From Macrostomum lignano (taxonomy: Eukaryota): a stretch of DNA of 64,000 nucleotides. The stretch spans positions 1,173,370 to 1,237,369 of the forward strand of contig NIVC01000056.1 in the NCBI GenBank assembly GCA_002269645.1, written 5' to 3'. This document shows positions 39,974 to 64,000 of this stretch, piece after piece; position 1 is the first letter of the stretch, and the number at the start of each line of letters is the position of its first letter. The notes beneath the pieces are model-generated. The model was not told where the DNA came from. It saw only the letters and a program-made list of their open reading frames with translations, and made no database searches. The translations under genes and the position numbers were made by a program.

Positions 39974-40225
<252 letters not shown>

Positions 40226-41901: not shown

Positions 41902-42802
41902 TTCGAAAGCAACTGATGTCAATCAAGTTAAACTATTCTTAATAATTGGCATTCAAAAGTAACCATACCCTACTACACTACTACTACCCATACTACACGA
42001 GTCTGTATTATGTTCCATCCGCTCATTTATGCAGTACATACATGTATTCTATAATTAGCTAAAGCCAACTTTACAATTACGTTAGCATAAGAAATTTCAG
42101 TTAGTCTGCTCATATGCATATCATCTCTCTGTATTATTGCATTAAAAATTGCAATAAATTTTGAATAGATTAGACTTAAAGTGAGCATATCTGCAAGTTC
42201 CCTTATTTAACTACACCTGTGCGGTACATACAGCCTAGCCACACTTCTTAACTTCCATTTAGCTTACTCCATCCTTAAGTACATGTACTTCCTTGCCTTA
42301 AGTACATTTCTAGACATCTGTAGACCAGTTGCGGCAGCCATTGTTAAAGCTGCAGCCGGAAGACTTCACTGCGTTTCAATGACACGGTTTATCAAAGCGA
42401 CCCTAGTCTACAAAAAGAGAGCTATTGAAAATTATTGGTAGTTCCTTCATTCAGCAATTCAACTTTTCTACACAACTAATCTGTGGAAATGGAGTGTACG
42501 GCTCGAAAATGTATAATTTCTAGGCATCCCTTGCGAGCTGGTCGGGTCATCAGGTTTATCAATGCAACCAGCGTCGATCATTAGTTGTATGAGTAGAAAG
42601 AGTGAAATTCCTTTGGTATTTAGCTAAGTTATACTCTGGTTGGTAGCACTTAAAAATTCTAGCTAGCTACTTGATTAAGATGCACGCAGACTTCGTTCGC
42701 TGCTGTGTGTGTGTTGTTGTTGTGTGAGCACTATATGACTTGCTTACTGTCGCCCCGATTGCAGCTCTAAGCAGCTTTCAAGCACAAAAAGCAAAACACA
42801 GA

Positions 42803-42943
42803 ATGCCAGCCAAGCAGAACCAGCAGCAGGGAGCCGGCAAGCAGCAGGCAGCCGATGCCAACAAGGACGCCAAGCAGCAAAAGCAGCAGCAACAACAACA
42901 GCAGGCTGGTGGCGCTGCCGCCAAGGCCGGTCAGAAGAAGTGA
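42803..42943 (+). CDS. Array micropeptide A, 46 aa (MPAKQNQQQGAGKQQAADANKDAKQQKQQQQQQQAGGAAAKAGQKK), copy 1
   Basis: GC-rich island with codon usage like the host genes, A-rich context cacagaATG, upstream acceptor ttgcag. The paralog B keeps the frame and shared motifs while differing at synonymous sites. Confidence 0.78.
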   Translation: MPAKQNQQQGAGKQQAADANKDAKQQKQQQQQQQAGGAAAKAGQKK

Positions 42944-43666
42944 TGCGATTTCAGAGAGATCAATTGTTAGGTGTGCTCTGCACCGCATGACAGCCAGGCC
43001 TACTATTGGCGTGACTGAGTGGAACTCTGAGCTCTCTCTATACCTGTACAGTATACTATAATCTGTCCGCATTAGCGTATCGTCTTTGTTAGGGCTAAAG
43101 AGTCGCTGCATCCAGCTCTGAAACTGCAATTAGGTTACTTACTGTATTCTGTACTGTACTAACCTTACTCACGTGCTGACGAAAGCTTATAGTTGTAAAT
43201 TGATCCTTTGAAAAAAGTTGTTTGATTGTAGAATAATTACAGTAGCATTTCCTAATTACATATTGGACAGTATTTTTAAAGCAAGCAGGTGTTTTCGGCT
43301 CTCGTTCTTTAAATGCTCTCTGTTTCCCTATATGCTTAGGATGTTTTGTGTTAGATCAGCAGTTGCAGACAGAGAAAGGGGGCATTACTTGCATTTGGCT
43401 TGATATAGCATCCTCTAGATTTCGTTGTCCAGCACATCCAACTAGAGGCTAGATATGCACCAATGTTCCTTGTAGAGCTGCACTGCTCCAATAAGCGGTT
43501 AAATAAGAAGAAGTGCCCTTTAGGACATATCTAGATAGTTTTTCTAATGAGGATGTACAGCCAGCTAGCTATACTTGAAGTTGACGTTGGTCACCTTGCA
43601 AACCGCAGCTGCTCGCTTCTCAAATTGCAGCTTCAAGCATCAGCTTCCTAATCTCAACAGACAAAC

Positions 43667-43792
43667 ATGCCTGCCAAGAAAGCCGCCGCCGACAAGAAGG
43701 CCGCCGATGCCAACAAGGACGCCGCCAAGCAGCAGCCGGAAAAAGCCGAGGGCGAGCAGGCCGCTGCCAAGGGCGGTCATAAGAAGAAGTGA
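43667..43792 (+). CDS. Array micropeptide B, 41 aa (MPAKKAAADKKAADANKDAAKQQPEKAEGEQAAAKGGHKKK), copy 1
   Basis: Below the ORF-track cutoff; context acaaacATG, in-frame TAA 15 nt upstream, GC3-rich codons; homologous to A. Confidence 0.78.
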   Translation: MPAKKAAADKKAADANKDAAKQQPEKAEGEQAAAKGGHKKK

Positions 43793-44679
43793 TCGATGTG
43801 CGTTGCGGATCGCGCTATACCAACCTGTATGCTGGCTTGATCGCGGCGCTCCTACCGACCTGTACGAGTTGCTGGATGCCTGCTGATCAAACTGCAACTT
43901 ATAGCGAATTGTAATTACATGTGCTGGCCGGATACTAATCAATGTTGCATCATACTCAGTTATTACATACTACACAACTGCAGTCTCTACAGCTCTGCAC
44001 TGTAAAGCGCAGACGCATTTTATACAGTACGTAAATCGTAGCCTGTCAGCCATGCTCTATACTATGGTACCAGCTGCTCTGTTCTGACGGGCAGTCATGT
44101 ACTTGTCGTAAATTACATTGTTGTACTGGGTGCATCAGTTACTTACAAAGTTGTTGCAACAACCAACAATCGTTTTTCGGCTTGAGCTCTACTTTTACCA
44201 ATATTTTTGCTGCTTCCTAGTCACGTATATAGTTTCATGCTCCTCAAGGCTTAGGGGCCTCTCGCTCACAGGCTGACAGTGGGGCTGTTTCAGTTTATGT
44301 ATAAGAGTTAGACATTTTGCAGTGCAATAATTAGCTACTGGGCTTTTGTAGACTAATCTGTGGAAATGGAGTATACGGCTCGTAAATGTATAATTTCTAG
44401 GCATCCCTTGCGAGCTGGTCAGGTCATCAGGTTTATCAATGCAACCAGCGTCGATCATTAGTTGTATGAGTAGAAAGAGTGAAATTCCTTTGGTATTTAG
44501 CTAAGTTATACTCTGGTTGGTAGCACTTAAAAATTCTAGCTAGCTACTTGATTAAGATGCACGCAGACTTCGTTCGCTGCTGTGTGTGTGTTGTTGTTGT
44601 GTGAGCACTATATGACTTGCTTACTGTCGCCCCGATTGCAGCTCTAAGCAGCTTTCAAGCACAAAAAGCAAAACACAGA

Positions 44680-44820
44680 ATGCCAGCCAAGCAGAACCAG
44701 CAGCAGGGAGCCGGCAAGCAGCAGGCAGCCGATGCCAACAAGGACGCCAAGCAGCAAAAGCAGCAGCAACAACAACAGCAGGCTGGTGGCGCTGCCGCCA
44801 AGGCCGGTCAGAAGAAGTGA
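44680..44820 (+). CDS. Micropeptide A copy 2
   Basis: Same translation as copy 1. Confidence 0.75.
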   Translation: MPAKQNQQQGAGKQQAADANKDAKQQKQQQQQQQAGGAAAKAGQKK

Positions 44821-45543
44821 TGCGATTTCAGAGAGATCAATTGTTAGGTGTGCTCTGCACCGCATGACAGCCAGGCCTACTATTGGCGTGACTGAGTGGA
44901 ACTCTGAGCTCTCTCTATACCTGTACAGTATACTATAATCTGTCCGCATTAGCGTATCGTCTTTGTTAGGGCTAAAGAGTCGCTGCATCCAGCTCTGAAA
45001 CTGCAATTAGGTTACTTACTGTATTCTGTACTGTACTAACCTTACTCACGTGCTGACGAAAGCTTATAGTTGTAAATTGATCCTTTGAAAAAAGTTGTTT
45101 GATTGTAGAATAATTACAGTAGCATTTCCTAATTACATATTGGACAGTATTTTTAAAGCAAGCAGGTGTTTTCGGCTCTCGTTCTTTAAATGCTCTCTGT
45201 TTCCCTATATGCTTAGGATGTTTTGTGTTAGATCAGCAGTTGCAGACAGAGAAAGGGGGCATTACTTGCATTTGGCTTGATATAGCATCCTCTAGATTTC
45301 GTTGTCCAGCACATCCAACTAGAGGCTAGATATGCACCAATGTTCCTTGTAGAGCTGCACTGCTCCAATAAGCGGTTAAATAAGAAGAAGTGCCCTTTAG
45401 GACATATCTAGATAGTTTTTCTAATGAGGATGTACAGCCAGCTAGCTATACTTGAAGTTGACGTTGGTCACCTTGCAAACCGCAGCTGCTCGCTTCTCAA
45501 ATTGCAGCTTCAAGCATCAGCTTCCTAATCTCAACAGACAAAC

Positions 45544-45669
45544 ATGCCTGCCAAGAAAGCCGCCGCCGACAAGAAGGCCGCCGATGCCAACAAGGACGCC
45601 GCCAAGCAGCAGCCGGAAAAAGCCGAGGGCGAGCAGGCCGCTGCCAAGGGCGGTCATAAGAAGAAGTGA
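45544..45669 (+). CDS. Micropeptide B copy 2
   Basis: Same as copy 1. Confidence 0.75.
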   Translation: MPAKKAAADKKAADANKDAAKQQPEKAEGEQAAAKGGHKKK

Positions 45670-46556
45670 TCGATGTGCGTTGCGGATCGCGCTATACCAA
45701 CCTGTATGCTGGCTTGATCGCGGCGCTCCTACCGACCTGTACGAGTTGCTGGATGCCTGCTGATCAAACTGCAACTTATAGCGAATTGTAATTACATGTG
45801 CTGGCCGGATACTAATCAATGTTGCATCATACTCAGTTATTACATACTACACAACTGCAGTCTCTACAGCTCTGCACTGTAAAGCGCAGACGCATTTTAT
45901 ACAGTACGTAAATCGTAGCCTGTCAGCCATGCTCTATACTATGGTACCAGCTGCTCTGTTCTGACGGGCAGTCATGTACTTGTCGTAAATTACATTGTTG
46001 TACTGGGTGCATCAGTTACTTACAAAGTTGTTGCAACAACCAACAATCGTTTTTCGGCTTGAGCTCTACTTTTACCAATATTTTTGCTGCTTCCTAGTCA
46101 CGTATATAGTTTCATGCTCCTCAAGGCTTAGGGGCCTCTCGCTCACAGGCTGACAGTGGGGCTGTTTCAGTTTATGTATAAGAGTTAGACATTTTGCAGT
46201 GCAATAATTAGCTACTGGGCTTTTGTAGACTAATCTGTGGAAATGGAGTATACGGCTCGTAAATGTATAATTTCTAGGCATCCCTTGCGAGCTGGTCAGG
46301 TCATCAGGTTTATCAATGCAACCAGCGTCGATCATTAGTTGTATGAGTAGAAAGAGTGAAATTCCTTTGGTATTTAGCTAAGTTATACTCTGGTTGGTAG
46401 CACTTAAAAATTCTAGCTAGCTACTTGATTAAGATGCACGCAGACTTCGTTCGCTGCTGTGTGTGTGTTGTTGTTGTGTGAGCACTATATGACTTGCTTA
46501 CTGTCGCCCCGATTGCAGCTCTAAGCAGCTTTCAAGCACAAAAAGCAAAACACAGA

Positions 46557-46697
46557 ATGCCAGCCAAGCAGAACCAGCAGCAGGGAGCCGGCAAGCAGCA
46601 GGCAGCCGATGCCAACAAGGACGCCAAGCAGCAAAAGCAGCAGCAACAACAACAGCAGGCTGGTGGCGCTGCCGCCAAGGCCGGTCAGAAGAAGTGA
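46557..46697 (+). CDS. Micropeptide A copy 3
   Basis: Same as copy 1. Confidence 0.75.
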   Translation: MPAKQNQQQGAGKQQAADANKDAKQQKQQQQQQQAGGAAAKAGQKK

Positions 46698-47420
46698 TGC
46701 GATTTCAGAGAGATCAATTGTTAGGTGTGCTCTGCACCGCATGACAGCCAGGCCTACTATTGGCGTGACTGAGTGGAACTCTGAGCTCTCTCTATACCTG
46801 TACAGTATACTATAATCTGTCCGCATTAGCGTATCGTCTTTGTTAGGGCTAAAGAGTCGCTGCATCCAGCTCTGAAACTGCAATTAGGTTACTTACTGTA
46901 TTCTGTACTGTACTAACCTTACTCACGTGCTGACGAAAGCTTATAGTTGTAAATTGATCCTTTGAAAAAAGTTGTTTGATTGTAGAATAATTACAGTAGC
47001 ATTTCCTAATTACATATTGGACAGTATTTTTAAAGCAAGCAGGTGTTTTCGGCTCTCGTTCTTTAAATGCTCTCTGTTTCCCTATATGCTTAGGATGTTT
47101 TGTGTTAGATCAGCAGTTGCAGACAGAGAAAGGGGGCATTACTTGCATTTGGCTTGATATAGCATCCTCTAGATTTCGTTGTCCAGCACATCCAACTAGA
47201 GGCTAGATATGCACCAATGTTCCTTGTAGAGCTGCACTGCTCCAATAAGCGGTTAAATAAGAAGAAGTGCCCTTTAGGACATATCTAGATAGTTTTTCTA
47301 ATGAGGATGTACAGCCAGCTAGCTATACTTGAAGTTGACGTTGGTCACCTTGCAAACCGCAGCTGCTCGCTTCTCAAATTGCAGCTTCAAGCATCAGCTT
47401 CCTAATCTCAACAGACAAAC

Positions 47421-47546
47421 ATGCCTGCCAAGAAAGCCGCCGCCGACAAGAAGGCCGCCGATGCCAACAAGGACGCCGCCAAGCAGCAGCCGGAAAAAGC
47501 CGAGGGCGAGCAGGCCGCTGCCAAGGGCGGTCATAAGAAGAAGTGA
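47421..47546 (+). CDS. Micropeptide B copy 3
   Basis: Same as copy 1. Confidence 0.75.
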   Translation: MPAKKAAADKKAADANKDAAKQQPEKAEGEQAAAKGGHKKK

Positions 47547-48433
47547 TCGATGTGCGTTGCGGATCGCGCTATACCAACCTGTATGCTGGCTTGATCGCGG
47601 CGCTCCTACCGACCTGTACGAGTTGCTGGATGCCTGCTGATCAAACTGCAACTTATAGCGAATTGTAATTACATGTGCTGGCCGGATACTAATCAATGTT
47701 GCATCATACTCAGTTATTACATACTACACAACTGCAGTCTCTACAGCTCTGCACTGTAAAGCGCAGACGCATTTTATACAGTACGTAAATCGTAGCCTGT
47801 CAGCCATGCTCTATACTATGGTACCAGCTGCTCTGTTCTGACGGGCAGTCATGTACTTGTCGTAAATTACATTGTTGTACTGGGTGCATCAGTTACTTAC
47901 AAAGTTGTTGCAACAACCAACAATCGTTTTTCGGCTTGAGCTCTACTTTTACCAATATTTTTGCTGCTTCCTAGTCACGTATATAGTTTCATGCTCCTCA
48001 AGGCTTAGGGGCCTCTCGCTCACAGGCTGACAGTGGGGCTGTTTCAGTTTATGTATAAGAGTTAGACATTTTGCAGTGCAATAATTAGCTACTGGGCTTT
48101 TGTAGACTAATCTGTGGAAATGGAGTATACGGCTCGTAAATGTATAATTTCTAGGCATCCCTTGCGAGCTGGTCAGGTCATCAGGTTTATCAATGCAACC
48201 AGCGTCGATCATTAGTTGTATGAGTAGAAAGAGTGAAATTCCTTTGGTATTTAGCTAAGTTATACTCTGGTTGGTAGCACTTAAAAATTCTAGCTAGCTA
48301 CTTGATTAAGATGCACGCAGACTTCGTTCGCTGCTGTGTGTGTGTTGTTGTTGTGTGAGCACTATATGACTTGCTTACTGTCGCCCCGATTGCAGCTCTA
48401 AGCAGCTTTCAAGCACAAAAAGCAAAACACAGA

Positions 48434-48574
48434 ATGCCAGCCAAGCAGAACCAGCAGCAGGGAGCCGGCAAGCAGCAGGCAGCCGATGCCAACAAGGACG
48501 CCAAGCAGCAAAAGCAGCAGCAACAACAACAGCAGGCTGGTGGCGCTGCCGCCAAGGCCGGTCAGAAGAAGTGA
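48434..48574 (+). CDS. Micropeptide A copy 4
   Basis: Same as copy 1. Confidence 0.75.
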   Translation: MPAKQNQQQGAGKQQAADANKDAKQQKQQQQQQQAGGAAAKAGQKK

Positions 48575-49297
48575 TGCGATTTCAGAGAGATCAATTGTTA
48601 GGTGTGCTCTGCACCGCATGACAGCCAGGCCTACTATTGGCGTGACTGAGTGGAACTCTGAGCTCTCTCTATACCTGTACAGTATACTATAATCTGTCCG
48701 CATTAGCGTATCGTCTTTGTTAGGGCTAAAGAGTCGCTGCATCCAGCTCTGAAACTGCAATTAGGTTACTTACTGTATTCTGTACTGTACTAACCTTACT
48801 CACGTGCTGACGAAAGCTTATAGTTGTAAATTGATCCTTTGAAAAAAGTTGTTTGATTGTAGAATAATTACAGTAGCATTTCCTAATTACATATTGGACA
48901 GTATTTTTAAAGCAAGCAGGTGTTTTCGGCTCTCGTTCTTTAAATGCTCTCTGTTTCCCTATATGCTTAGGATGTTTTGTGTTAGATCAGCAGTTGCAGA
49001 CAGAGAAAGGGGGCATTACTTGCATTTGGCTTGATATAGCATCCTCTAGATTTCGTTGTCCAGCACATCCAACTAGAGGCTAGATATGCACCAATGTTCC
49101 TTGTAGAGCTGCACTGCTCCAATAAGCGGTTAAATAAGAAGAAGTGCCCTTTAGGACATATCTAGATAGTTTTTCTAATGAGGATGTACAGCCAGCTAGC
49201 TATACTTGAAGTTGACGTTGGTCACCTTGCAAACCGCAGCTGCTCGCTTCTCAAATTGCAGCTTCAAGCATCAGCTTCCTAATCTCAACAGACAAAC

Positions 49298-49423
49298 ATG
49301 CCTGCCAAGAAAGCCGCCGCCGACAAGAAGGCCGCCGATGCCAACAAGGACGCCGCCAAGCAGCAGCCGGAAAAAGCCGAGGGCGAGCAGGCCGCTGCCA
49401 AGGGCGGTCATAAGAAGAAGTGA
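49298..49423 (+). CDS. Micropeptide B copy 4
   Basis: Same as copy 1. Confidence 0.75.
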   Translation: MPAKKAAADKKAADANKDAAKQQPEKAEGEQAAAKGGHKKK

Positions 49424-50310
49424 TCGATGTGCGTTGCGGATCGCGCTATACCAACCTGTATGCTGGCTTGATCGCGGCGCTCCTACCGACCTGTACGAGT
49501 TGCTGGATGCCTGCTGATCAAACTGCAACTTATAGCGAATTGTAATTACATGTGCTGGCCGGATACTAATCAATGTTGCATCATACTCAGTTATTACATA
49601 CTACACAACTGCAGTCTCTACAGCTCTGCACTGTAAAGCGCAGACGCATTTTATACAGTACGTAAATCGTAGCCTGTCAGCCATGCTCTATACTATGGTA
49701 CCAGCTGCTCTGTTCTGACGGGCAGTCATGTACTTGTCGTAAATTACATTGTTGTACTGGGTGCATCAGTTACTTACAAAGTTGTTGCAACAACCAACAA
49801 TCGTTTTTCGGCTTGAGCTCTACTTTTACCAATATTTTTGCTGCTTCCTAGTCACGTATATAGTTTCATGCTCCTCAAGGCTTAGGGGCCTCTCGCTCAC
49901 AGGCTGACAGTGGGGCTGTTTCAGTTTATGTATAAGAGTTAGACATTTTGCAGTGCAATAATTAGCTACTGGGCTTTTGTAGACTAATCTGTGGAAATGG
50001 AGTATACGGCTCGTAAATGTATAATTTCTAGGCATCCCTTGCGAGCTGGTCAGGTCATCAGGTTTATCAATGCAACCAGCGTCGATCATTAGTTGTATGA
50101 GTAGAAAGAGTGAAATTCCTTTGGTATTTAGCTAAGTTATACTCTGGTTGGTAGCACTTAAAAATTCTAGCTAGCTACTTGATTAAGATGCACGCAGACT
50201 TCGTTCGCTGCTGTGTGTGTGTTGTTGTTGTGTGAGCACTATATGACTTGCTTACTGTCGCCCCGATTGCAGCTCTAAGCAGCTTTCAAGCACAAAAAGC
50301 AAAACACAGA

Positions 50311-50451
50311 ATGCCAGCCAAGCAGAACCAGCAGCAGGGAGCCGGCAAGCAGCAGGCAGCCGATGCCAACAAGGACGCCAAGCAGCAAAAGCAGCAGCAA
50401 CAACAACAGCAGGCTGGTGGCGCTGCCGCCAAGGCCGGTCAGAAGAAGTGA
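50311..50451 (+). CDS. Micropeptide A copy 5
   Basis: Same as copy 1. Confidence 0.75.
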   Translation: MPAKQNQQQGAGKQQAADANKDAKQQKQQQQQQQAGGAAAKAGQKK

Positions 50452-51174: not shown

Positions 51175-51300
51175 ATGCCTGCCAAGAAAGCCGCCGCCGA
51201 CAAGAAGGCCGCCGATGCCAACAAGGACGCCGCCAAGCAGCAGCCGGAAAAAGCCGAGGGCGAGCAGGCCGCTGCCAAGGGCGGTCATAAGAAGAAGTGA
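51175..51300 (+). CDS. Micropeptide B copy 5
   Basis: Same as copy 1. Confidence 0.75.
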   Translation: MPAKKAAADKKAADANKDAAKQQPEKAEGEQAAAKGGHKKK

Positions 51301-52187: not shown

Positions 52188-52328
52188 ATGCCAGCCAAGC
52201 AGAACCAGCAGCAGGGAGCCGGCAAGCAGCAGGCAGCCGATGCCAACAAGGACGCCAAGCAGCAAAAGCAGCAGCAACAACAACAGCAGGCTGGTGGCGC
52301 TGCCGCCAAGGCCGGTCAGAAGAAGTGA
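52188..52328 (+). CDS. Micropeptide A copy 6
   Basis: Same as copy 1. Confidence 0.75.
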   Translation: MPAKQNQQQGAGKQQAADANKDAKQQKQQQQQQQAGGAAAKAGQKK

Positions 52329-53051: not shown

Positions 53052-53177
53052 ATGCCTGCCAAGAAAGCCGCCGCCGACAAGAAGGCCGCCGATGCCAACA
53101 AGGACGCCGCCAAGCAGCAGCCGGAAAAAGCCGAGGGCGAGCAGGCCGCTGCCAAGGGCGGTCATAAGAAGAAGTGA
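53052..53177 (+). CDS. Micropeptide B copy 6
   Basis: Same as copy 1. Confidence 0.75.
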   Translation: MPAKKAAADKKAADANKDAAKQQPEKAEGEQAAAKGGHKKK

Positions 53178-54064: not shown

Positions 54065-54205
54065 ATGCCAGCCAAGCAGAACCAGCAGCAGGGAGCCGGC
54101 AAGCAGCAGGCAGCCGATGCCAACAAGGACGCCAAGCAGCAAAAGCAGCAGCAACAACAACAGCAGGCTGGTGGCGCTGCCGCCAAGGCCGGTCAGAAGA
54201 AGTGA
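54065..54205 (+). CDS. Micropeptide A copy 7
   Basis: Same as copy 1. Confidence 0.75.
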   Translation: MPAKQNQQQGAGKQQAADANKDAKQQKQQQQQQQAGGAAAKAGQKK

Positions 54206-54928: not shown

Positions 54929-55054
54929 ATGCCTGCCAAGAAAGCCGCCGCCGACAAGAAGGCCGCCGATGCCAACAAGGACGCCGCCAAGCAGCAGCCG
55001 GAAAAAGCCGAGGGCGAGCAGGCCGCTGCCAAGGGCGGTCATAAGAAGAAGTGA
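54929..55054 (+). CDS. Micropeptide B copy 7
   Basis: Same as copy 1. Confidence 0.75.
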   Translation: MPAKKAAADKKAADANKDAAKQQPEKAEGEQAAAKGGHKKK

Positions 55055-55939
55055 TCGATGTGCGTTGCGGATCGCGCTATACCAACCTGTATGCTGGCTT
55101 GATCGCGGCGCTCCTACCGACCTGTACGAGTTGCTGGATGCCTGCTGATCAAACTGCAACTTATAGCGAATTGTAATTACATGTGCTGGCCGGATACTAA
55201 TCAATGTTGCATCATACTCAGTTATTACATACTACACAACTGCAGTCTCTACAGCTCTGCACTGTAAAGCGCAGACGCATTTTATACAGTACGTAAATCG
55301 TAGCCTGTCAGCCATGCTCTATACTATGGTACCAGCTGCTCTGTTCTGACGGGCAGTCATGTACTTGTCGTAAATTACATTGTTGTACTGGGTGCATCAG
55401 TTACTTACAAAGTTGTTGCAACAACCAACAATCGTTTTTCGGCTTGAGCTCTACTTTTACCAATATTTTTGCTGCTTCCTAGTCACGTATATAGTTTCAT
55501 GCTCCTCAAGGCTTAGGGGCCTCTCGCTCACAGGCTGACAGTGGGGCTGTTTCAGTTTATGTATAAGAGTTAGACATTTTGCAGCAATAATTAGCTACTG
55601 GGCTTTTGTAGACTAATCTGTGGAAATGGAGTATACGGCTCGTAAATGTATAATTTCTAGGCATCCCTTGCGAGCTGGTCAGGTCATCAGGTTTATCAAT
55701 GCAACCAGCGTCGATCATTAGTTGTATGAGTAGAAAGAGTGAAATTCCTTTGGTATTTAGCTAAGTTATACTCTGGTTGGTAGCACTTAAAAATTCTAGC
55801 TAGCTACTTGATTAAGATGCACGCAGACTTCGTTCGCTGCTGTGTGTGTGTTGTTGTTGTGTGAGCACTATATGACTTGCTTACTGTCGCCCCGATTGCA
55901 GCTCTAAGCAGCTTTCAAGCACAAAAAGCAAAACACAGA

Positions 55940-56080
55940 ATGCCAGCCAAGCAGAACCAGCAGCAGGGAGCCGGCAAGCAGCAGGCAGCCGATGCCAACA
56001 AGGACGCCAAGCAGCAAAAGCAGCAGCAACAACAACAGCAGGCTGGTGGCGCTGCCGCCAAGGCCGGTCAGAAGAAGTGA
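55940..56080 (+). CDS. Micropeptide A copy 8
   Basis: Same as copy 1. Confidence 0.75.
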   Translation: MPAKQNQQQGAGKQQAADANKDAKQQKQQQQQQQAGGAAAKAGQKK

Positions 56081-56803
56081 TGCGATTTCAGAGAGATCAA
56101 TTGTTAGGTGTGCTCTGCACCGCATGACAGCCAGGCCTACTATTGGCGTGACTGAGTGGAACTCTGAGCTCTCTCTATACCTGTACAGTATACTATAATC
56201 TGTCCGCATTAGCGTATCGTCTTTGTTAGGGCTAAAGAGTCGCTGCATCCAGCTCTGAAACTGCAATTAGGTTACTTACTGTATTCTGTACTGTACTAAC
56301 CTTACTCACGTGCTGACGAAAGCTTATAGTTGTAAATTGATCCTTTGAAAAAAGTTGTTTGATTGTAGAATAATTACAGTAGCATTTCCTAATTACATAT
56401 TGGACAGTATTTTTAAAGCAAGCAGGTGTTTTCGGCTCTCGTTCTTTAAATGCTCTCTGTTTCCCTATATGCTTAGGATGTTTTGTGTTAGATCAGCAGT
56501 TGCAGACAGAGAAAGGGGGCATTACTTGCATTTGGCTTGATATAGCATCCTCTAGATTTCGTTGTCCAGCACATCCAACTAGAGGCTAGATATGCACCAA
56601 TGTTCCTTGTAGAGCTGCACTGCTCCAATAAGCGGTTAAATAAGAAGAAGTGCCCTTTAGGACATATCTAGATAGTTTTTCTAATGAGGATGTACAGCCA
56701 GCTAGCTATACTTGAAGTTGACGTTGGTCACCTTGCAAACCGCAGCTGCTCGCTTCTCAAATTGCAGCTTCAAGCATCAGCTTCCTAATCTCAACAGACA
56801 AAC

Positions 56804-56929
56804 ATGCCTGCCAAGAAAGCCGCCGCCGACAAGAAGGCCGCCGATGCCAACAAGGACGCCGCCAAGCAGCAGCCGGAAAAAGCCGAGGGCGAGCAGGCCG
56901 CTGCCAAGGGCGGTCATAAGAAGAAGTGA
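56804..56929 (+). CDS. Micropeptide B copy 8
   Basis: Same as copy 1. Confidence 0.75.
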   Translation: MPAKKAAADKKAADANKDAAKQQPEKAEGEQAAAKGGHKKK

Positions 56930-57816
56930 TCGATGTGCGTTGCGGATCGCGCTATACCAACCTGTATGCTGGCTTGATCGCGGCGCTCCTACCGACCTGT
57001 ACGAGTTGCTGGATGCCTGCTGATCAAACTGCAACTTATAGCGAATTGTAATTACATGTGCTGGCCGGATACTAATCAATGTTGCATCATACTCAGTTAT
57101 TACATACTACACAACTGCAGTCTCTACAGCTCTGCACTGTAAAGCGCAGACGCATTTTATACAGTACGTAAATCGTAGCCTGTCAGCCATGCTCTATACT
57201 ATGGTACCAGCTGCTCTGTTCTGACGGGCAGTCATGTACTTGTCGTAAATTACATTGTTGTACTGGGTGCATCAGTTACTTACAAAGTTGTTGCAACAAC
57301 CAACAATCGTTTTTCGGCTTGAGCTCTACTTTTACCAATATTTTTGCTGCTTCCTAGTCACGTATATAGTTTCATGCTCCTCAAGGCTTAGGGGCCTCTC
57401 GCTCACAGGCTGACAGTGGGGCTGTTTCAGTTTATGTATAAGAGTTAGACATTTTGCAGTGCAATAATTAGCTACTGGGCTTTTGTAGACTAATCTGTGG
57501 AAATGGAGTATACGGCTCGTAAATGTATAATTTCTAGGCATCCCTTGCGAGCTGGTCAGGTCATCAGGTTTATCAATGCAACCAGCGTCGATCATTAGTT
57601 GTATGAGTAGAAAGAGTGAAATTCCTTTGGTATTTAGCTAAGTTATACTCTGGTTGGTAGCACTTAAAAATTCTAGCTAGCTACTTGATTAAGATGCACG
57701 CAGACTTCGTTCGCTGCTGTGTGTGTGTTGTTGTTGTGTGAGCACTATATGACTTGCTTACTGTCGCCCCGATTGCAGCTCTAAGCAGCTTTCAAGCACA
57801 AAAAGCAAAACACAGA

Positions 57817-57957
57817 ATGCCAGCCAAGCAGAACCAGCAGCAGGGAGCCGGCAAGCAGCAGGCAGCCGATGCCAACAAGGACGCCAAGCAGCAAAAGCAG
57901 CAGCAACAACAACAGCAGGCTGGTGGCGCTGCCGCCAAGGCCGGTCAGAAGAAGTGA
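57817..57957 (+). CDS. Micropeptide A copy 9
   Basis: Same as copy 1. Confidence 0.75.
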   Translation: MPAKQNQQQGAGKQQAADANKDAKQQKQQQQQQQAGGAAAKAGQKK

Positions 57958-58680
57958 TGCGATTTCAGAGAGATCAATTGTTAGGTGTGCTCTGCACCGC
58001 ATGACAGCCAGGCCTACTATTGGCGTGACTGAGTGGAACTCTGAGCTCTCTCTATACCTGTACAGTATACTATAATCTGTCCGCATTAGCGTATCGTCTT
58101 TGTTAGGGCTAAAGAGTCGCTGCATCCAGCTCTGAAACTGCAATTAGGTTACTTACTGTATTCTGTACTGTACTAACCTTACTCACGTGCTGACGAAAGC
58201 TTATAGTTGTAAATTGATCCTTTGAAAAAAGTTGTTTGATTGTAGAATAATTACAGTAGCATTTCCTAATTACATATTGGACAGTATTTTTAAAGCAAGC
58301 AGGTGTTTTCGGCTCTCGTTCTTTAAATGCTCTCTGTTTCCCTATATGCTTAGGATGTTTTGTGTTAGATCAGCAGTTGCAGACAGAGAAAGGGGGCATT
58401 ACTTGCATTTGGCTTGATATAGCATCCTCTAGATTTCGTTGTCCAGCACATCCAACTAGAGGCTAGATATGCACCAATGTTCCTTGTAGAGCTGCACTGC
58501 TCCAATAAGCGGTTAAATAAGAAGAAGTGCCCTTTAGGACATATCTAGATAGTTTTTCTAATGAGGATGTACAGCCAGCTAGCTATACTTGAAGTTGACG
58601 TTGGTCACCTTGCAAACCGCAGCTGCTCGCTTCTCAAATTGCAGCTTCAAGCATCAGCTTCCTAATCTCAACAGACAAAC

Positions 58681-58806
58681 ATGCCTGCCAAGAAAGCCGC
58701 CGCCGACAAGAAGGCCGCCGATGCCAACAAGGACGCCGCCAAGCAGCAGCCGGAAAAAGCCGAGGGCGAGCAGGCCGCTGCCAAGGGCGGTCATAAGAAG
58801 AAGTGA
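58681..58806 (+). CDS. Micropeptide B copy 9
   Basis: Same as copy 1. Confidence 0.75.
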   Translation: MPAKKAAADKKAADANKDAAKQQPEKAEGEQAAAKGGHKKK

Positions 58807-59693
58807 TCGATGTGCGTTGCGGATCGCGCTATACCAACCTGTATGCTGGCTTGATCGCGGCGCTCCTACCGACCTGTACGAGTTGCTGGATGCCTGCTGA
58901 TCAAACTGCAACTTATAGCGAATTGTAATTACATGTGCTGGCCGGATACTAATCAATGTTGCATCATACTCAGTTATTACATACTACACAACTGCAGTCT
59001 CTACAGCTCTGCACTGTAAAGCGCAGACGCATTTTATACAGTACGTAAATCGTAGCCTGTCAGCCATGCTCTATACTATGGTACCAGCTGCTCTGTTCTG
59101 ACGGGCAGTCATGTACTTGTCGTAAATTACATTGTTGTACTGGGTGCATCAGTTACTTACAAAGTTGTTGCAACAACCAACAATCGTTTTTCGGCTTGAG
59201 CTCTACTTTTACCAATATTTTTGCTGCTTCCTAGTCACGTATATAGTTTCATGCTCCTCAAGGCTTAGGGGCCTCTCGCTCACAGGCTGACAGTGGGGCT
59301 GTTTCAGTTTATGTATAAGAGTTAGACATTTTGCAGTGCAATAATTAGCTACTGGGCTTTTGTAGACTAATCTGTGGAAATGGAGTATACGGCTCGTAAA
59401 TGTATAATTTCTAGGCATCCCTTGCGAGCTGGTCAGGTCATCAGGTTTATCAATGCAACCAGCGTCGATCATTAGTTGTATGAGTAGAAAGAGTGAAATT
59501 CCTTTGGTATTTAGCTAAGTTATACTCTGGTTGGTAGCACTTAAAAATTCTAGCTAGCTACTTGATTAAGATGCACGCAGACTTCGTTCGCTGCTGTGTG
59601 TGTGTTGTTGTTGTGTGAGCACTATATGACTTGCTTACTGTCGCCCCGATTGCAGCTCTAAGCAGCTTTCAAGCACAAAAAGCAAAACACAGA

Positions 59694-59834
59694 ATGCCAG
59701 CCAAGCAGAACCAGCAGCAGGGAGCCGGCAAGCAGCAGGCAGCCGATGCCAACAAGGACGCCAAGCAGCAAAAGCAGCAGCAACAACAACAGCAGGCTGG
59801 TGGCGCTGCCGCCAAGGCCGGTCAGAAGAAGTGA
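59694..59834 (+). CDS. Micropeptide A copy 10
   Basis: Same as copy 1. Confidence 0.75.
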   Translation: MPAKQNQQQGAGKQQAADANKDAKQQKQQQQQQQAGGAAAKAGQKK

Positions 59835-60557
59835 TGCGATTTCAGAGAGATCAATTGTTAGGTGTGCTCTGCACCGCATGACAGCCAGGCCTACTATTGG
59901 CGTGACTGAGTGGAACTCTGAGCTCTCTCTATACCTGTACAGTATACTATAATCTGTCCGCATTAGCGTATCGTCTTTGTTAGGGCTAAAGAGTCGCTGC
60001 ATCCAGCTCTGAAACTGCAATTAGGTTACTTACTGTATTCTGTACTGTACTAACCTTACTCACGTGCTGACGAAAGCTTATAGTTGTAAATTGATCCTTT
60101 GAAAAAAGTTGTTTGATTGTAGAATAATTACAGTAGCATTTCCTAATTACATATTGGACAGTATTTTTAAAGCAAGCAGGTGTTTTCGGCTCTCGTTCTT
60201 TAAATGCTCTCTGTTTCCCTATATGCTTAGGATGTTTTGTGTTAGATCAGCAGTTGCAGACAGAGAAAGGGGGCATTACTTGCATTTGGCTTGATATAGC
60301 ATCCTCTAGATTTCGTTGTCCAGCACATCCAACTAGAGGCTAGATATGCACCAATGTTCCTTGTAGAGCTGCACTGCTCCAATAAGCGGTTAAATAAGAA
60401 GAAGTGCCCTTTAGGACATATCTAGATAGTTTTTCTAATGAGGATGTACAGCCAGCTAGCTATACTTGAAGTTGACGTTGGTCACCTTGCAAACCGCAGC
60501 TGCTCGCTTCTCAAATTGCAGCTTCAAGCATCAGCTTCCTAATCTCAACAGACAAAC

Positions 60558-60683
60558 ATGCCTGCCAAGAAAGCCGCCGCCGACAAGAAGGCCGCCGATG
60601 CCAACAAGGACGCCGCCAAGCAGCAGCCGGAAAAAGCCGAGGGCGAGCAGGCCGCTGCCAAGGGCGGTCATAAGAAGAAGTGA
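60558..60683 (+). CDS. Micropeptide B copy 10
   Basis: Same as copy 1. Confidence 0.75.
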   Translation: MPAKKAAADKKAADANKDAAKQQPEKAEGEQAAAKGGHKKK

Positions 60684-61570
60684 TCGATGTGCGTTGCGGA
60701 TCGCGCTATACCAACCTGTATGCTGGCTTGATCGCGGCGCTCCTACCGACCTGTACGAGTTGCTGGATGCCTGCTGATCAAACTGCAACTTATAGCGAAT
60801 TGTAATTACATGTGCTGGCCGGATACTAATCAATGTTGCATCATACTCAGTTATTACATACTACACAACTGCAGTCTCTACAGCTCTGCACTGTAAAGCG
60901 CAGACGCATTTTATACAGTACGTAAATCGTAGCCTGTCAGCCATGCTCTATACTATGGTACCAGCTGCTCTGTTCTGACGGGCAGTCATGTACTTGTCGT
61001 AAATTACATTGTTGTACTGGGTGCATCAGTTACTTACAAAGTTGTTGCAACAACCAACAATCGTTTTTCGGCTTGAGCTCTACTTTTACCAATATTTTTG
61101 CTGCTTCCTAGTCACGTATATAGTTTCATGCTCCTCAAGGCTTAGGGGCCTCTCGCTCACAGGCTGACAGTGGGGCTGTTTCAGTTTATGTATAAGAGTT
61201 AGACATTTTGCAGTGCAATAATTAGCTACTGGGCTTTTGTAGACTAATCTGTGGAAATGGAGTATACGGCTCGTAAATGTATAATTTCTAGGCATCCCTT
61301 GCGAGCTGGTCAGGTCATCAGGTTTATCAATGCAACCAGCGTCGATCATTAGTTGTATGAGTAGAAAGAGTGAAATTCCTTTGGTATTTAGCTAAGTTAT
61401 ACTCTGGTTGGTAGCACTTAAAAATTCTAGCTAGCTACTTGATTAAGATGCACGCAGACTTCGTTCGCTGCTGTGTGTGTGTTGTTGTTGTGTGAGCACT
61501 ATATGACTTGCTTACTGTCGCCCCGATTGCAGCTCTAAGCAGCTTTCAAGCACAAAAAGCAAAACACAGA

Positions 61571-61711
61571 ATGCCAGCCAAGCAGAACCAGCAGCAGGGA
61601 GCCGGCAAGCAGCAGGCAGCCGATGCCAACAAGGACGCCAAGCAGCAAAAGCAGCAGCAACAACAACAGCAGGCTGGTGGCGCTGCCGCCAAGGCCGGTC
61701 AGAAGAAGTGA
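61571..61711 (+). CDS. Micropeptide A copy 11
   Basis: Same as copy 1. Confidence 0.75.
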   Translation: MPAKQNQQQGAGKQQAADANKDAKQQKQQQQQQQAGGAAAKAGQKK

Positions 61712-62434
61712 TGCGATTTCAGAGAGATCAATTGTTAGGTGTGCTCTGCACCGCATGACAGCCAGGCCTACTATTGGCGTGACTGAGTGGAACTCTGAGC
61801 TCTCTCTATACCTGTACAGTATACTATAATCTGTCCGCATTAGCGTATCGTCTTTGTTAGGGCTAAAGAGTCGCTGCATCCAGCTCTGAAACTGCAATTA
61901 GGTTACTTACTGTATTCTGTACTGTACTAACCTTACTCACGTGCTGACGAAAGCTTATAGTTGTAAATTGATCCTTTGAAAAAAGTTGTTTGATTGTAGA
62001 ATAATTACAGTAGCATTTCCTAATTACATATTGGACAGTATTTTTAAAGCAAGCAGGTGTTTTCGGCTCTCGTTCTTTAAATGCTCTCTGTTTCCCTATA
62101 TGCTTAGGATGTTTTGTGTTAGATCAGCAGTTGCAGACAGAGAAAGGGGGCATTACTTGCATTTGGCTTGATATAGCATCCTCTAGATTTCGTTGTCCAG
62201 CACATCCAACTAGAGGCTAGATATGCACCAATGTTCCTTGTAGAGCTGCACTGCTCCAATAAGCGGTTAAATAAGAAGAAGTGCCCTTTAGGACATATCT
62301 AGATAGTTTTTCTAATGAGGATGTACAGCCAGCTAGCTATACTTGAAGTTGACGTTGGTCACCTTGCAAACCGCAGCTGCTCGCTTCTCAAATTGCAGCT
62401 TCAAGCATCAGCTTCCTAATCTCAACAGACAAAC

Positions 62435-62560
62435 ATGCCTGCCAAGAAAGCCGCCGCCGACAAGAAGGCCGCCGATGCCAACAAGGACGCCGCCAAGCAG
62501 CAGCCGGAAAAAGCCGAGGGCGAGCAGGCCGCTGCCAAGGGCGGTCATAAGAAGAAGTGA
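62435..62560 (+). CDS. Micropeptide B copy 11
   Basis: Same as copy 1. Confidence 0.75.
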   Translation: MPAKKAAADKKAADANKDAAKQQPEKAEGEQAAAKGGHKKK

Positions 62561-63447
62561 TCGATGTGCGTTGCGGATCGCGCTATACCAACCTGTATGC
62601 TGGCTTGATCGCGGCGCTCCTACCGACCTGTACGAGTTGCTGGATGCCTGCTGATCAAACTGCAACTTATAGCGAATTGTAATTACATGTGCTGGCCGGA
62701 TACTAATCAATGTTGCATCATACTCAGTTATTACATACTACACAACTGCAGTCTCTACAGCTCTGCACTGTAAAGCGCAGACGCATTTTATACAGTACGT
62801 AAATCGTAGCCTGTCAGCCATGCTCTATACTATGGTACCAGCTGCTCTGTTCTGACGGGCAGTCATGTACTTGTCGTAAATTACATTGTTGTACTGGGTG
62901 CATCAGTTACTTACAAAGTTGTTGCAACAACCAACAATCGTTTTTCGGCTTGAGCTCTACTTTTACCAATATTTTTGCTGCTTCCTAGTCACGTATATAG
63001 TTTCATGCTCCTCAAGGCTTAGGGGCCTCTCGCTCACAGGCTGACAGTGGGGCTGTTTCAGTTTATGTATAAGAGTTAGACATTTTGCAGTGCAATAATT
63101 AGCTACTGGGCTTTTGTAGACTAATCTGTGGAAATGGAGTATACGGCTCGTAAATGTATAATTTCTAGGCATCCCTTGCGAGCTGGTCAGGTCATCAGGT
63201 TTATCAATGCAACCAGCGTCGATCATTAGTTGTATGAGTAGAAAGAGTGAAATTCCTTTGGTATTTAGCTAAGTTATACTCTGGTTGGTAGCACTTAAAA
63301 ATTCTAGCTAGCTACTTGATTAAGATGCACGCAGACTTCGTTCGCTGCTGTGTGTGTGTTGTTGTTGTGTGAGCACTATATGACTTGCTTACTGTCGCCC
63401 CGATTGCAGCTCTAAGCAGCTTTCAAGCACAAAAAGCAAAACACAGA

Positions 63448-63588
63448 ATGCCAGCCAAGCAGAACCAGCAGCAGGGAGCCGGCAAGCAGCAGGCAGCCGA
63501 TGCCAACAAGGACGCCAAGCAGCAAAAGCAGCAGCAACAACAACAGCAGGCTGGTGGCGCTGCCGCCAAGGCCGGTCAGAAGAAGTGA
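63448..63588 (+). CDS. Micropeptide A copy 12
   Basis: Same as copy 1. Confidence 0.75.
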   Translation: MPAKQNQQQGAGKQQAADANKDAKQQKQQQQQQQAGGAAAKAGQKK

Positions 63589-64000
63589 TGCGATTTCAGA
63601 GAGATCAATTGTTAGGTGTGCTCTGCACCGCATGACAGCCAGGCCTACTATTGGCGTGACTGAGTGGAACTCTGAGCTCTCTCTATACCTGTACAGTATA
63701 CTATAATCTGTCCGCATTAGCGTATCGTCTTTGTTAGGGCTAAAGAGTCGCTGCATCCAGCTCTGAAACTGCAATTAGGTTACTTACTGTATTCTGTACT
63801 GTACTAACCTTACTCACGTGCTGACGAAAGCTTATAGTTGTAAATTGATCCTTTGAAAAAAGTTGTTTGATTGTAGAATAATTACAGTAGCATTTCCTAA
63901 TTACATATTGGACAGTATTTTTAAAGCAAGCAGGTGTTTTCGGCTCTCGTTCTTTAAATGCTCTCTGTTTCCCTATATGCTTAGGAGTTTTGTGTTAGAT

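Follow-up and report, generated by a model that had tools for sequence, protein, structure and literature searches.

On balance (probability about 0.55), the DNA described here carries a genuine array of two Macrostomum-restricted paralogous micropeptide genes, A and B, whose amplification would serve dosage and whose expression would proceed from read-through transcripts by cis-splicing and probable spliced leader (SL) trans-splicing. The window, meaning the whole stretch that was analysed, is the final 64,000 nt of the Macrostomum lignano contig NIVC01000056.1 (1,237,369 nt; Mlig_3_7 assembly), and the array fills its last 21.5 kb with 11.47 (~11.5) units of 1877 bp until it meets the contig break. 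A preliminary description had reported 12 A and 11 B copies, head-to-tail and co-oriented in a 1877-bp unit from 42475 onward, and this is confirmed by copy counts, spacing and alignment. It also had the array continuing past the window: the array is indeed unfinished at 64000, but the assembled contig itself stops at the window edge. The array and its coding sequences lie as follows:

42475..64000, + strand: tandem array (TRF, exact matches, MAFFT), last unit incomplete at contig end
42803..42943, + strand: peptide A CDS copy 1, 46 aa, MPAKQNQQQGAGKQQAADANKDAKQQKQQQQQQQAGGAAAKAGQKK
43667..43792, + strand: peptide B CDS copy 1, 41 aa, MPAKKAAADKKAADANKDAAKQQPEKAEGEQAAAKGGHKKK
44680..44820, + strand: peptide A CDS copy 2
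45544..45669, + strand: peptide B CDS copy 2
46557..46697, + strand: peptide A CDS copy 3
47421..47546, + strand: peptide B CDS copy 3
48434..48574, + strand: peptide A CDS copy 4
49298..49423, + strand: peptide B CDS copy 4
50311..50451, + strand: peptide A CDS copy 5
51175..51300, + strand: peptide B CDS copy 5
52188..52328, + strand: peptide A CDS copy 6
53052..53177, + strand: peptide B CDS copy 6
54065..54205, + strand: peptide A CDS copy 7, with the 2-bp deletion of its unit ~1.52 kb downstream of the ATG
54929..55054, + strand: peptide B CDS copy 7
55940..56080, + strand: peptide A CDS copy 8
56804..56929, + strand: peptide B CDS copy 8
57817..57957, + strand: peptide A CDS copy 9
58681..58806, + strand: peptide B CDS copy 9
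59694..59834, + strand: peptide A CDS copy 10
60558..60683, + strand: peptide B CDS copy 10
61571..61711, + strand: peptide A CDS copy 11
62435..62560, + strand: peptide B CDS copy 11
63448..63588, + strand: peptide A CDS copy 12, where the annotated model Mlig001540g3 ends

Exact-match counting places the 12 A ORF starts from 42803 to 63448 and the 11 B ORF starts from 43667 to 62435, and the translations are identical in 12/12 copies of A (46 aa) and 11/11 copies of B (41 aa). The spacing is 1877 bp throughout except for one 1875-bp interval, and aligning the 11 full units with MAFFT leaves two variable columns in all, namely the 2-bp deletion in unit 7, a near-100% identity that is possibly overstated through consensus polishing of the PacBio assembly. 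TRF picks up the 1877-bp periodicity via an internal 18-bp AKKAA repeat. Likeness to the next unit stops 328 nt before the first A ATG, which sets the array start at 42475, and this first unit carries three substitutions (at 42496, 42506 and 42544). Concerted evolution, by unequal crossing-over or gene conversion, would keep the units nearly identical. Amplification for dosage, as proposed at the outset, is the most economical reading of such an array. The same window contains more than 20 other tandem arrays.

The best-documented aspect of the mechanism, and one missing from the preliminary description, is the gene architecture, in which a leader exon and sites for cis- and trans-splicing combine with read-through transcription:

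40847..40970, + strand: non-coding leader exon, 124 nt, no ATG, followed by donor CCAT/GTAAGT at 40971
40971..42764, + strand: intron from the leader exon to the first A exon, GTAAGT ... TTGCAG
42759..42764, + strand: TTGCAG acceptor of the A exon (exon start 42765), in every unit at 1877-bp spacing (1875 after unit 7)
43625..43630, + strand: TTGCAG, predicted acceptor of the B exon (exon start 43631), in every unit, paralogous to the A acceptor (ATTGCAGCTTCAAGCA)
44027..44641, + strand: intron from the B 3'UTR donor (ACA/GTACGT) to the next A acceptor, from PAA49765.1 (Mlig030344g1), in every unit

Transcription of the array is supported by three 'hypothetical protein' gene models (PAA92363.1, PAA49765.1 and PAA46468.1) in the Mlig_3_7 annotation, which was built from RNA-seq with trans-splice and poly(A) evidence (PMC5730564). 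In PAA92363.1 (Mlig001540g3) the leader exon is joined to the A acceptor, the junction codon T+CT (Ser) giving exactly ...AKPS/LSSFQ, and the B-to-A junction codon A+CT (Thr) gives ...ILYT/LSSFQ, as in PAA49765.1. For models P0002 and P0003, GT-AG splicing onto the A acceptor was reproduced exactly, and the 5'-partial CDSs begin at the first full codon past this acceptor. The three models use the A acceptor, and none documents use of the B acceptor. Mlig001540g3 places its acceptor at the last A copy because of multi-mapping, which creates a 22-kb 'intron', and a 153-aa model that spans five units defied reconstruction; these inconsistencies indicate that read mapping within the array is ambiguous. 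An acceptor of the form ATTGCAG/CT lies ~37 nt (36-38) upstream of each A and B ATG, and its TTGCAG fits YTNCAG, the [T/C]TNCAG acceptor motif of the M. lignano SL, in a species with 30% of its genes trans-spliced and 15% in operons (PMC8629364).

The expression scheme that we propose is partly documented and partly predicted. RNA polymerase II would start at or close to the AUG-free leader exon (40847-40970), ~1.6 kb before the array begins, and read through successive units; the leader would be cis-spliced to an A acceptor, and within the array the donor in the B 3'UTR could be joined in cis to the A acceptor of the following unit. The 35-nt spliced leader would most probably be added at the YTNCAG acceptor that precedes each ATG by 36-38 nt, freeing capped monocistronic mRNAs as in M. 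lignano operons. The leader and the A 5'UTR lack an ATG, and in the spliced leader-A mRNA no AUG comes before that of peptide A; joining the SL to A or to B yields ML-stop or MLQASAS-stop, mini-ORFs from the AUG that ends the SL. In such mRNAs the peptide AUG, with A at -3, would be the first or be preceded only by this two-codon or seven-codon mini-ORF. Canonical AATAAA and ATTAAA are absent from the unit, which holds only AATAAT and GTAAAT-type variants, and this counts against separable cistrons, which need 3'-end formation.

The micropeptide genes might instead be real without being operon-like, each unit or gene having its own promoter and yielding a short mRNA of its own, and the leader-exon and B-to-A models would then represent minor read-through. 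Promoters could fit into the 687 nt between the A stop and the B acceptor and the 849 nt between the B stop and the A acceptor, classical dosage arrays (histones, 5S rRNA, CUP1) have one promoter per unit, reported M. lignano operons comprise at most nine genes with a modal spacing of ~100 bp (PMC8629364), and mapping artefacts are evident in the gene models. We nevertheless regard independent promoters as unlikely: both genes keep, immediately before a short 5'UTR, a consensus acceptor that independent initiation would not need, no spacer sequence conserved between A and B could act as a shared promoter, and two distinct upstream donors are joined to the A acceptor, which means that the polymerase crosses from B to A and from leader to A.

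As judged from sequence, A and B look like genuine paralogous protein-coding genes because they combine a conserved start, stop and core with splice acceptors, codon bias and annotated transcripts; their translation is putative. Likeness between them within the unit is limited to the CDSs (74-77% identity, a figure inflated by low-complexity GCC, AAG and CAG coding regions) and a 16-nt acceptor block. Both peptides start with MPAK, share the core AADANKDA (23/24 nt identical) and end in AAAKxGxKK-stop. GC content reaches 62-64% in the CDSs versus 43% in the remainder of the unit, and the preferred codons AAG for Lys (17/19) and GCC for Ala (20/24) are far less dominant in the neighbouring SPT6 and BCAT exons (23/48, P = 0.002, and 28/59, P = 0.003).

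The array is also present on two further contigs. On NIVC01003793.1 (L003) both the leader exon and the beginning of the array recur, with a single mismatch over 2125 nt and a different indel pattern; the locus L002 corresponds to window 30847-64000 at 100% identity. The array on NIVC01004846.1 (L001) is 97.4% identical to that of the window, retains both ORFs intact and keeps the B acceptor in its units 2-5. Its non-coding sequence differs by 29 substitutions in 1610 nt (1.8% divergence), CDS A by none and CDS B by one substitution and one in-frame 3-nt indel, a coding deficit of substitutions of marginal significance (Poisson P = 0.047). This array resembles a homeologous subgenome copy, and its 1.8% fits the SNP divergence of 1.9-2.4% reported between M. 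lignano subgenomes (PMC10733133).

Less probable still is a transcribed satellite or minisatellite-like repeat with fortuitous ORFs, whose transcripts would be non-coding or noise and yield no peptide. Such repeats would be at home in the extremely repeat-rich M. lignano genome, of which tandem and simple repeats form 15% (PMC5730564), and in a window with so many other arrays; the A and B ORFs are short and of low complexity, ~25 ORFs of >=25 aa per unit arise by chance, and no homologue beyond M. lignano was found in our searches. What makes a satellite doubtful is that similarity between the A and B halves is restricted to ORFs and acceptors, that start and stop positions are preserved along with three peptide motifs, that codon bias is strong relative to neighbouring genes and the CDSs form GC-rich islands, that the peptide AUG comes first in the spliced leader-A mRNA, and that both ORFs are intact in a 1.8%-diverged array whose sole indel is in frame.

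The database models mis-delimit their CDSs, which carry a 5'-partial extension, are fused to a 3'UTR ORF or contain a frameshift. The suggestion that standard annotation would miss these genes is right for the exact 41-aa and 46-aa products, which as such are absent from database records, but three mis-delimited models already exist. It is very improbable that the genes really make the longer annotated proteins of 87, 100 and 153 aa, with A and B merely as their C-terminal parts: the frame is open upstream of the A ATG through the acceptor and is translated in database models, but the leader exon of the 5'-partial 100-aa model lacks an ATG, the 87-aa model begins at an ATG within the 3'UTR of B, past the B ORF, B is annotated solely as a frameshifted copy (P0001), and the translated extension reads LSSFQ in the window but LSSSQ in L001 while peptide A is identical. 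An assembly artefact, with one or few real copies multiplied by mis-assembly or homogenised by polishing of noisy long reads, is hardly credible even though the array runs up to a contig break with units of implausible identity, and Mlig_3_7 is redundant with 36% of its length in chimeric scaffolds (PMC10733133), for three separate contigs carry the array with differing indel and SNP patterns, the edge unit is more diverged than interior units, as it should be in a real array, the spliced B-to-A transcript needs head-to-tail order, and a contig break within a repeat usually means that the repeat is longer than the reads.

Rfam returned no match at the gathering threshold and none at E<=1 over 40400-46300, ARAGORN returned no tRNA, the SL RNA exon sequence matched nothing in the window even with 3 mismatches allowed, and neither a histone fold nor a histone 3' stem-loop was detected. 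Apart from A and B, the four longest ORFs in the unit contained no Pfam domain, and no terminal repeats were found for the unit. The initial view of a unit without rRNA, histone, tRNA, snRNA or transposon hallmarks was thereby borne out, and the genes, then called unrecognised, matched no described family in the databases searched: the peptides, for which sperm or chromatin protein, ribosome factor and hydrophilin had been put forward as candidate roles, did not match the Pfam models of TMA7, SERF, LEA or linker histone, had no sequence match in Pfam, NCBIfam or PDB at E <= 10, and had no relatives beyond M. lignano in Pfam, PDB or the protein databases searched. They appear to be species-restricted (M. 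lignano) or lineage-restricted micropeptide genes. Peptide A is rich in Gln, Lys and Ala and peptide B in Ala and Lys, with sizes of 4.2-4.8 kDa, GRAVY of -1.5 and -1.8, pI of 9.8-10.2 and a net charge of about +5; Thr, a hydrophobic core and a signal peptide are lacking. AlphaFold2 predicts helices in peptide B at residues 3-22 and 27-36 (mean pLDDT 65). Of the earlier portrait of tiny disordered basic peptides, small size and basicity stand, but the peptides are only moderately basic and B is predicted to be helix-prone, not simply disordered. The products would be abundant cytosolic or nuclear hydrophilic, moderately basic peptides, and their likeliest role, tentatively and as a guess, would be as bulk nucleic-acid- or ribonucleoprotein-binding peptides or hydrophilin-like protectants.

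Among known small basic or hydrophilic proteins, TMA7, SERF, LEA/hydrophilins, H1-like sperm proteins and type I antifreeze peptides have 40-65 aa or a composition similar to A and B (Lys, Ala, Gln, Asp, Glu; no hydrophobic core); some are helix-prone, and the Ala-rich type I antifreeze and sperm nuclear basic proteins are multicopy-encoded. Unlike these, A and B have no Thr periodicity, a net charge of only ~+5 and no 11-mer LEA repeat. Several paralogous tiny ORFs from one transcription unit also occur in tarsal-less/polished rice, where four or five 11-aa ORFs share one mature mRNA, with no kilobase DNA array and no trans-splicing. Histone, 5S rRNA and SL RNA clusters, the analogy drawn originally, likewise have homogeneous kilobase tandem units that are read as a high-output need, but in the array no histone fold, 3' stem-loop or RNA family was detected. 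The yeast CUP1 metallothionein array resembles it in a ~2-kb unit with a very small protein and a second ORF, and is a textbook dosage adaptation with ~10-fold or more amplification and homogenisation by unequal recombination; unlike the M. lignano array, it has a promoter per unit, a Cys-rich metal-binding product and no splicing (PMC4232551). Trypanosomatid and dinoflagellate arrays (e.g. PMC2488372, PMC5032977) have near-identical head-to-tail units too, transcribed polycistronically with an SL acceptor before every copy and copy number as dosage control, whereas the present array lies in an animal genome with otherwise conventional promoters and introns and encodes micropeptides of <50 aa without homologues. 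SL trans-spliced operons of M. lignano, other flatworms, nematodes and tunicates share with the array co-oriented genes, cistron-spanning read-through transcripts and a YTNCAG acceptor just before a short 5'UTR, in a host with ~30% of its genes trans-spliced (PMC8629364). Those operons hold 2-9 different genes ~100 bp apart (PMC8629364), whereas the array has at least 23 cistrons for two paralogous micropeptides, 0.7-0.85 kb apart, with cis-splicing competing for the same acceptor at which the motif predicts SL addition.

At the 3' end of the window, two paralogous ORFs alternate in head-to-tail repeats that together form the following feature:

42475-64000, plus strand: tandem array of head-to-tail units, period 1877 bp (exact-match ORF counting)

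Exact-match counting gave 12 copies of ORF A (46 aa, MPAKQNQQQGAGKQQAADANKDAKQQKQQQQQQQAGGAAAKAGQKK) and 11 of ORF B (41 aa, MPAKKAAADKKAADANKDAAKQQPEKAEGEQAAAKGGHKKK), all on the plus strand and with identical translations within each set, and the array as it had been outlined in the preliminary description was borne out in all countable details (12 A, 11 B, start at 42475, co-orientation). Only two columns vary when the 11 complete units are aligned, both belonging to a 2-bp deletion in unit 7, and the similarity between units ends at 42475, 328 nt 5' of the first A ATG, with three substitutions in this first unit. A homogeneous interior next to a substituted edge unit is what unequal exchange would be expected to leave in a real array. 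The array is unlikely to be an assembly artefact, although within-array identity may be overstated through consensus polishing of the PacBio data. The array reaches the window edge, past which it had been said to continue, but this edge is a contig break and not just the limit of the window, which is the last 64 kb of NIVC01000056.1 in assembly Mlig_3_7 (GCA_002269645.1, line DV1), and the counted copies may therefore differ from the true copy number.

Positions 1,204,216-1,237,369 of NIVC01000056.1, up to the contig end, correspond to window positions 30847-64000 at 100% identity, and two more contigs carry the array. One of them, NIVC01003793.1, has the upstream region and the array start as in the window, with 1 mismatch in 2125 nt and the 2-bp indel placed differently; the other, the 33.5-kb NIVC01004846.1 (L001), is 97.4% identical to the window array and has units of about 1870 bp. 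Line DV1 has three subgenomes with SNP differences of 1.9-2.4% (PMC10733133), and the 1.8% substitution divergence between the window and L001 arrays agrees with this range, as would fit homeologous copies. The internal homogeneity of each array indicates concerted evolution. The sole database protein with peptide B, PAA46468.1 (71 aa; L001, 442-657), is a frameshifted copy that in its second half translates the B 3' region in the +1 frame; the unit that holds it has TTGCTG in place of the TTGCAG acceptor, owing either to decay of an edge unit or to PacBio errors close to where the contig ends. The remaining four called B ORFs in L001 are intact and encode a 40-aa B' (N16S, one Ala fewer).

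Each unit contains about 25 ORFs of at least 25 aa, and ORF length by itself is thus no proof of genes. More telling is the comparison of the A half of the unit with the B half, in which similarity is confined to the coding regions (74-77% identity) and a 16-nt block directly upstream of the ORFs (ATTGCAGCTCTAAGCA vs ATTGCAGCTTCAAGCA), the remainder no longer being recognisably similar. The two peptides have in common an MPAK start, an AADANKDA-KQQ core (23 of 24 nt identical) and an AAAKxGxKK-stop end, and both ATGs have A at -3. The GC content of the two CDSs is 62-64% vs 43% elsewhere in the unit, and codon choice is strongly biased, with AAG used for 17 of 19 Lys codons in A and B vs 23 of 48 in the neighbouring SPT6 and BCAT exons (Fisher P = 0.002), and GCC for 20 of 24 Ala codons vs 28 of 59 (Fisher P = 0.003). 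Between the window and L001 arrays, CDS A does not differ at all and CDS B differs by one substitution (N16S) and one in-frame 3-nt deletion, as compared with 29 substitutions and 14 indel columns in 1610 nt of non-coding sequence, a depletion of substitutions in the CDSs that is only marginally significant (P = 0.047). The low complexity of both coding sequences counts against a coding reading; non-coding satellite DNA is the less likely reading, given the restriction of A/B similarity to the CDSs and acceptor, the codon bias, the GC island and the intact ORFs in the diverged L001 array.

The splicing architecture can be read from the gene models at the locus. M. lignano spliced-leader (SL) acceptors have the motif [T/C]TNCAG (PMC8629364), and the features concerned are:

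42759-42764, plus strand: TTGCAG acceptor of A, fitting [T/C]TNCAG and paralogous to the B acceptor
43625-43630, plus strand: predicted TTGCAG acceptor of B, fitting [T/C]TNCAG and paralogous to the A acceptor
43942-44026, plus strand: ORF in the B 3'UTR, in PAA49765.1 (Mlig030344g1), with donor ACA/GTACGT joined to the A acceptor (junction match)

The partial model PAA92363.1 (Mlig001540g3) reads ASLTAL...LLAKPS/LSSFQAQKAKHR-MPAKQ..., its first 41 residues being encoded at window 40847-40969, within an AUG-free leader exon upstream of the array. At its junction, the T preceding the genomic donor (T/GTAAGT) and the CT that follows TTGCAG at 42764 make up the observed Ser, just as A plus CT gives the observed Thr at the junction of PAA49765.1. 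Two different donors thus join the A acceptor, which means that transcription enters the array from the leader exon and also runs on from B to the next A, although each of these spliced models documents read-through over one junction only. Further gene calls are 5'-partial CDSs that start at the first complete codon past an A acceptor (L001 1406; window 48398), which is what the annotators' pipeline, described as cutting transcripts at spliced-leader peaks (PMC5730564), yields, and which is indirect evidence of SL addition at A. We infer use of the B acceptor from its paralogy with that of A and its conservation in L001. The sequence at 40847 (CTAG/G) does not fit YTNCAG.

In the leader-A mRNA, the first AUG is that of peptide A. 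The 35-nt SL itself ends in AUG, and this opens only Met-Leu-stop when joined to the A exon and only MLQASAS-stop when joined to the B exon, so that the peptide AUGs stay accessible. The unit contains no canonical AATAAA or ATTAAA poly(A) signal. A GU-rich (TG)n/(TTG)n tract lies at 44570-44600, with an equivalent in each unit, 45-75 nt 5' of every A acceptor, and B has no such tract before its own acceptor. The tract could help to form the 3' end of the B mRNA, as a downstream element, or promote trans-splicing, as an intercistronic element. A called 153-aa model (window 48398-57957; 17552-27111 of the array-bearing end of NIVC01000056.1) runs from the first codon past the unit-4 A acceptor to the unit-9 A stop, could not be reconstructed using canonical splice sites, and is probably an artefact of transcript mapping among identical repeats. 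Taken together, the paralogy of A and B, their splice architecture and transcript models, the codon bias and the conservation across homeologous arrays give candidate high-dosage micropeptide genes a better foundation and make them plausible.

The region upstream of the array contains two conserved genes and numerous minisatellites:

8077-20903, plus strand: homologue of the transcription elongation factor SPT6; N-terminus acidic, successive exons encoding Tex-like, HHH_7/HHH_9, S1 and SH2_2 domains
8973-9758, 11222-12719 and 16046-16355: SPT6 intron minisatellites (16 bp x48, 21 bp x71 and 28 bp x11, respectively)
17197-17545, 18325-19083 and 19779-20466: further SPT6 intron minisatellites (21 bp x17, 23 bp x33 and 24 bp x29, respectively)
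21200-22174 and 22931-23745: arrays between SPT6 and BCAT (53 bp x18 with 97% matches, and 16 bp x47)
24463-27874, plus strand: branched-chain amino-acid aminotransferase (BCAT), Aminotran_4, E = 2.8e-17
24887-25466 and 25840-26591: minisatellites of 22 bp and 24 bp interrupting BCAT

Both genes lie on the same strand as the array, and their introns are packed with minisatellites. Several SPT6 arrays whose period is a multiple of 3 continue the reading frame of the adjoining exon ORFs without a stop, e.g., the GSESHSL repeats after 10916. In all, over 20 distinct minisatellite arrays occur in the window, which agrees with the 15% of tandem and simple repeats reported for the M. lignano genome (PMC5730564). 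The interval from 28 to 40.8 kb yielded no convincing ORF. Shortly before the leader exon, the sequence at 38000-40000 is very AT-rich (24% GC), and poly(A/T) runs lie immediately 5' of 40847; the AT-rich stretch may be the array promoter region, but there is no TATA box at -30. The suffix 'g3' of Mlig001540g3 suggests that, in the annotation, the array and two genes 5' of it were grouped into a single transcriptional unit.

Operons in M. lignano have been defined as several cistrons on one precursor RNA, in which adjacent genes are co-oriented without intervening opposite-strand genes, intergenic distances are at most 1 kb (repeat-adjusted), the first exon of the downstream gene has a [T/C]TNCAG acceptor at its 5' end, and RNA-seq reads carry the 35-nt SL joined at the acceptor (PMC8629364). 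In the array, 23 of 23 ORFs are on the plus strand and the minus strand of the unit has no Pfam-supported ORF; TTGCAG precedes both A and B; and the distances, counted from the stop codon and not from the mRNA 3' end to the start of the following exon, are 687 nt for A to B and 849 nt for B to the next A. The boldest reading of these data, to which we give a probability of only about 15%, is that at least 23 cistrons, and more genome-wide, form one SL-resolved transcription unit driven by a promoter at ~40.85 kb, supplying very abundant, helix-prone polycationic micropeptides as partners of nucleic acids or ribonucleoproteins. The newly evolved micropeptide pair would then serve, e.g., in sperm chromatin compaction, ribosome storage, or osmotic and desiccation protection in an intertidal worm.

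Peptide A (4.85 kDa, pI 10.2, net charge about +5.5, GRAVY -1.8) is 39% Gln, and peptide B (4.2 kDa, pI 9.8, net charge about +4.6) is 34% Ala and 27% Lys; both are devoid of signal peptide, Cys, aromatics and, Met1 excepted, aliphatics larger than Ala. For B, AlphaFold2 predicts two helices, one at residues 3-22 and one at 27-36, with modest confidence (mean pLDDT 65), which agrees with its Ala-rich sequence and i/i+3-4 Lys/Asp pairs. The most apt description of both is that of small peptides, hydrophilic and moderately basic, of which at least B is predicted to be helix-prone. The former picture of tiny disordered basic peptides thus holds for their basicity, though this is moderate and below that of protamines and H1 tails, but less well for disorder in B. 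A bulk nucleic-acid-associated, ribonucleoprotein-associated or hydrophilin-like role would be the best guess, and no more than a guess.

That the family is unrecognised was upheld by searches of wide scope. Pfam-A (hmmscan, E ≤ 10, with filters that may lose very weak matches) contained no family for either peptide, NCBIfam none matching A or B, and a PDB profile search gave no match at E ≤ 10. B, A and the 58-aa A exon translation were compared with 5.8 billion proteins in a word-indexed search, and a profile of A and B with 1.84 billion cluster representatives in a full HMMER search; each returned only the three M. lignano models, and a JGI metagenome scan revealed no relatives. By exact look-up, the two peptides and a 67-aa TTG-extended ORF were absent from the assembly and Logan gene index, which yielded no independent transcript contigs for A or B.

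As for known elements, the absence of transposon hallmarks was confirmed and a transposable element array is rejected: the unit has no terminal repeats, its inverted repeats are only 14-16 nt and imperfect, and its four longest other ORFs contain no Pfam domain. A histone, rDNA, 5S, SL RNA or snRNA cluster is rejected, in agreement with the earlier failure to recognise rRNA, histone, tRNA or snRNA sequence in the unit, since Rfam gave no match with its gathering threshold and none with a cut-off of E ≤ 1, the array contains no tRNA and no SL RNA exon sequence, and the Pfam searches were negative. No profile HMM match was obtained for TMA7, SERF (4F5), LEA, linker histone or CCDC124/Lso2. Secreted or antimicrobial peptides are excluded by the lack of a signal peptide and by Ala and Met1 being the sole hydrophobic residues, hence no amphipathic membrane face. 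Type I antifreeze peptides are Ala-rich helices in which a Thr every 11 residues provides the ice-binding face, and both A and B lack Thr; an N-terminal X-P-K methylation motif is dismissed, the post-Met N-terminus being P-A-K.

It had been supposed that standard annotation would miss these genes. In fact, the locus already has hypothetical-protein models, but the 41-aa and 46-aa products are not in protein databases, and all three database proteins at the locus are mis-delimited, making it a concrete failure mode of transcriptome-guided annotation. The literature full texts searched make no mention of Mlig001540, Mlig030344, Mlig029044, PAA92363, PAA49765 or PAA46468, the three Mlig identifiers are absent from the searched supplements of M. 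lignano expression studies, and no described Macrostomum micropeptide or tandem gene array was found in the literature searched. The most fitting view of the locus is that of a tandem dosage array which encodes two orphan micropeptides and is combined with processing of the trans-splicing type. Should the ORFs go untranslated, it would simply add to the transcribed tandem repeats of a genome very rich in repeats; if the peptides are made, it represents a clean natural case of a lineage-restricted, possibly de novo, micropeptide family brought to high dosage by amplification of a kilobase-sized unit. M. lignano is a transgenic, RNAi-tractable model, which makes function testable in practice, and a single dsRNA would target all array copies.

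The use of SL trans-splicing to express tandem arrays is otherwise known from trypanosomes and dinoflagellates, and the locus offers a test of the reach of this strategy in animals. The largest M. lignano operon reported comprises 9 genes (PMC8629364), and the array, should it prove to be one unit, would be by far the largest operon-like unit reported in any animal.
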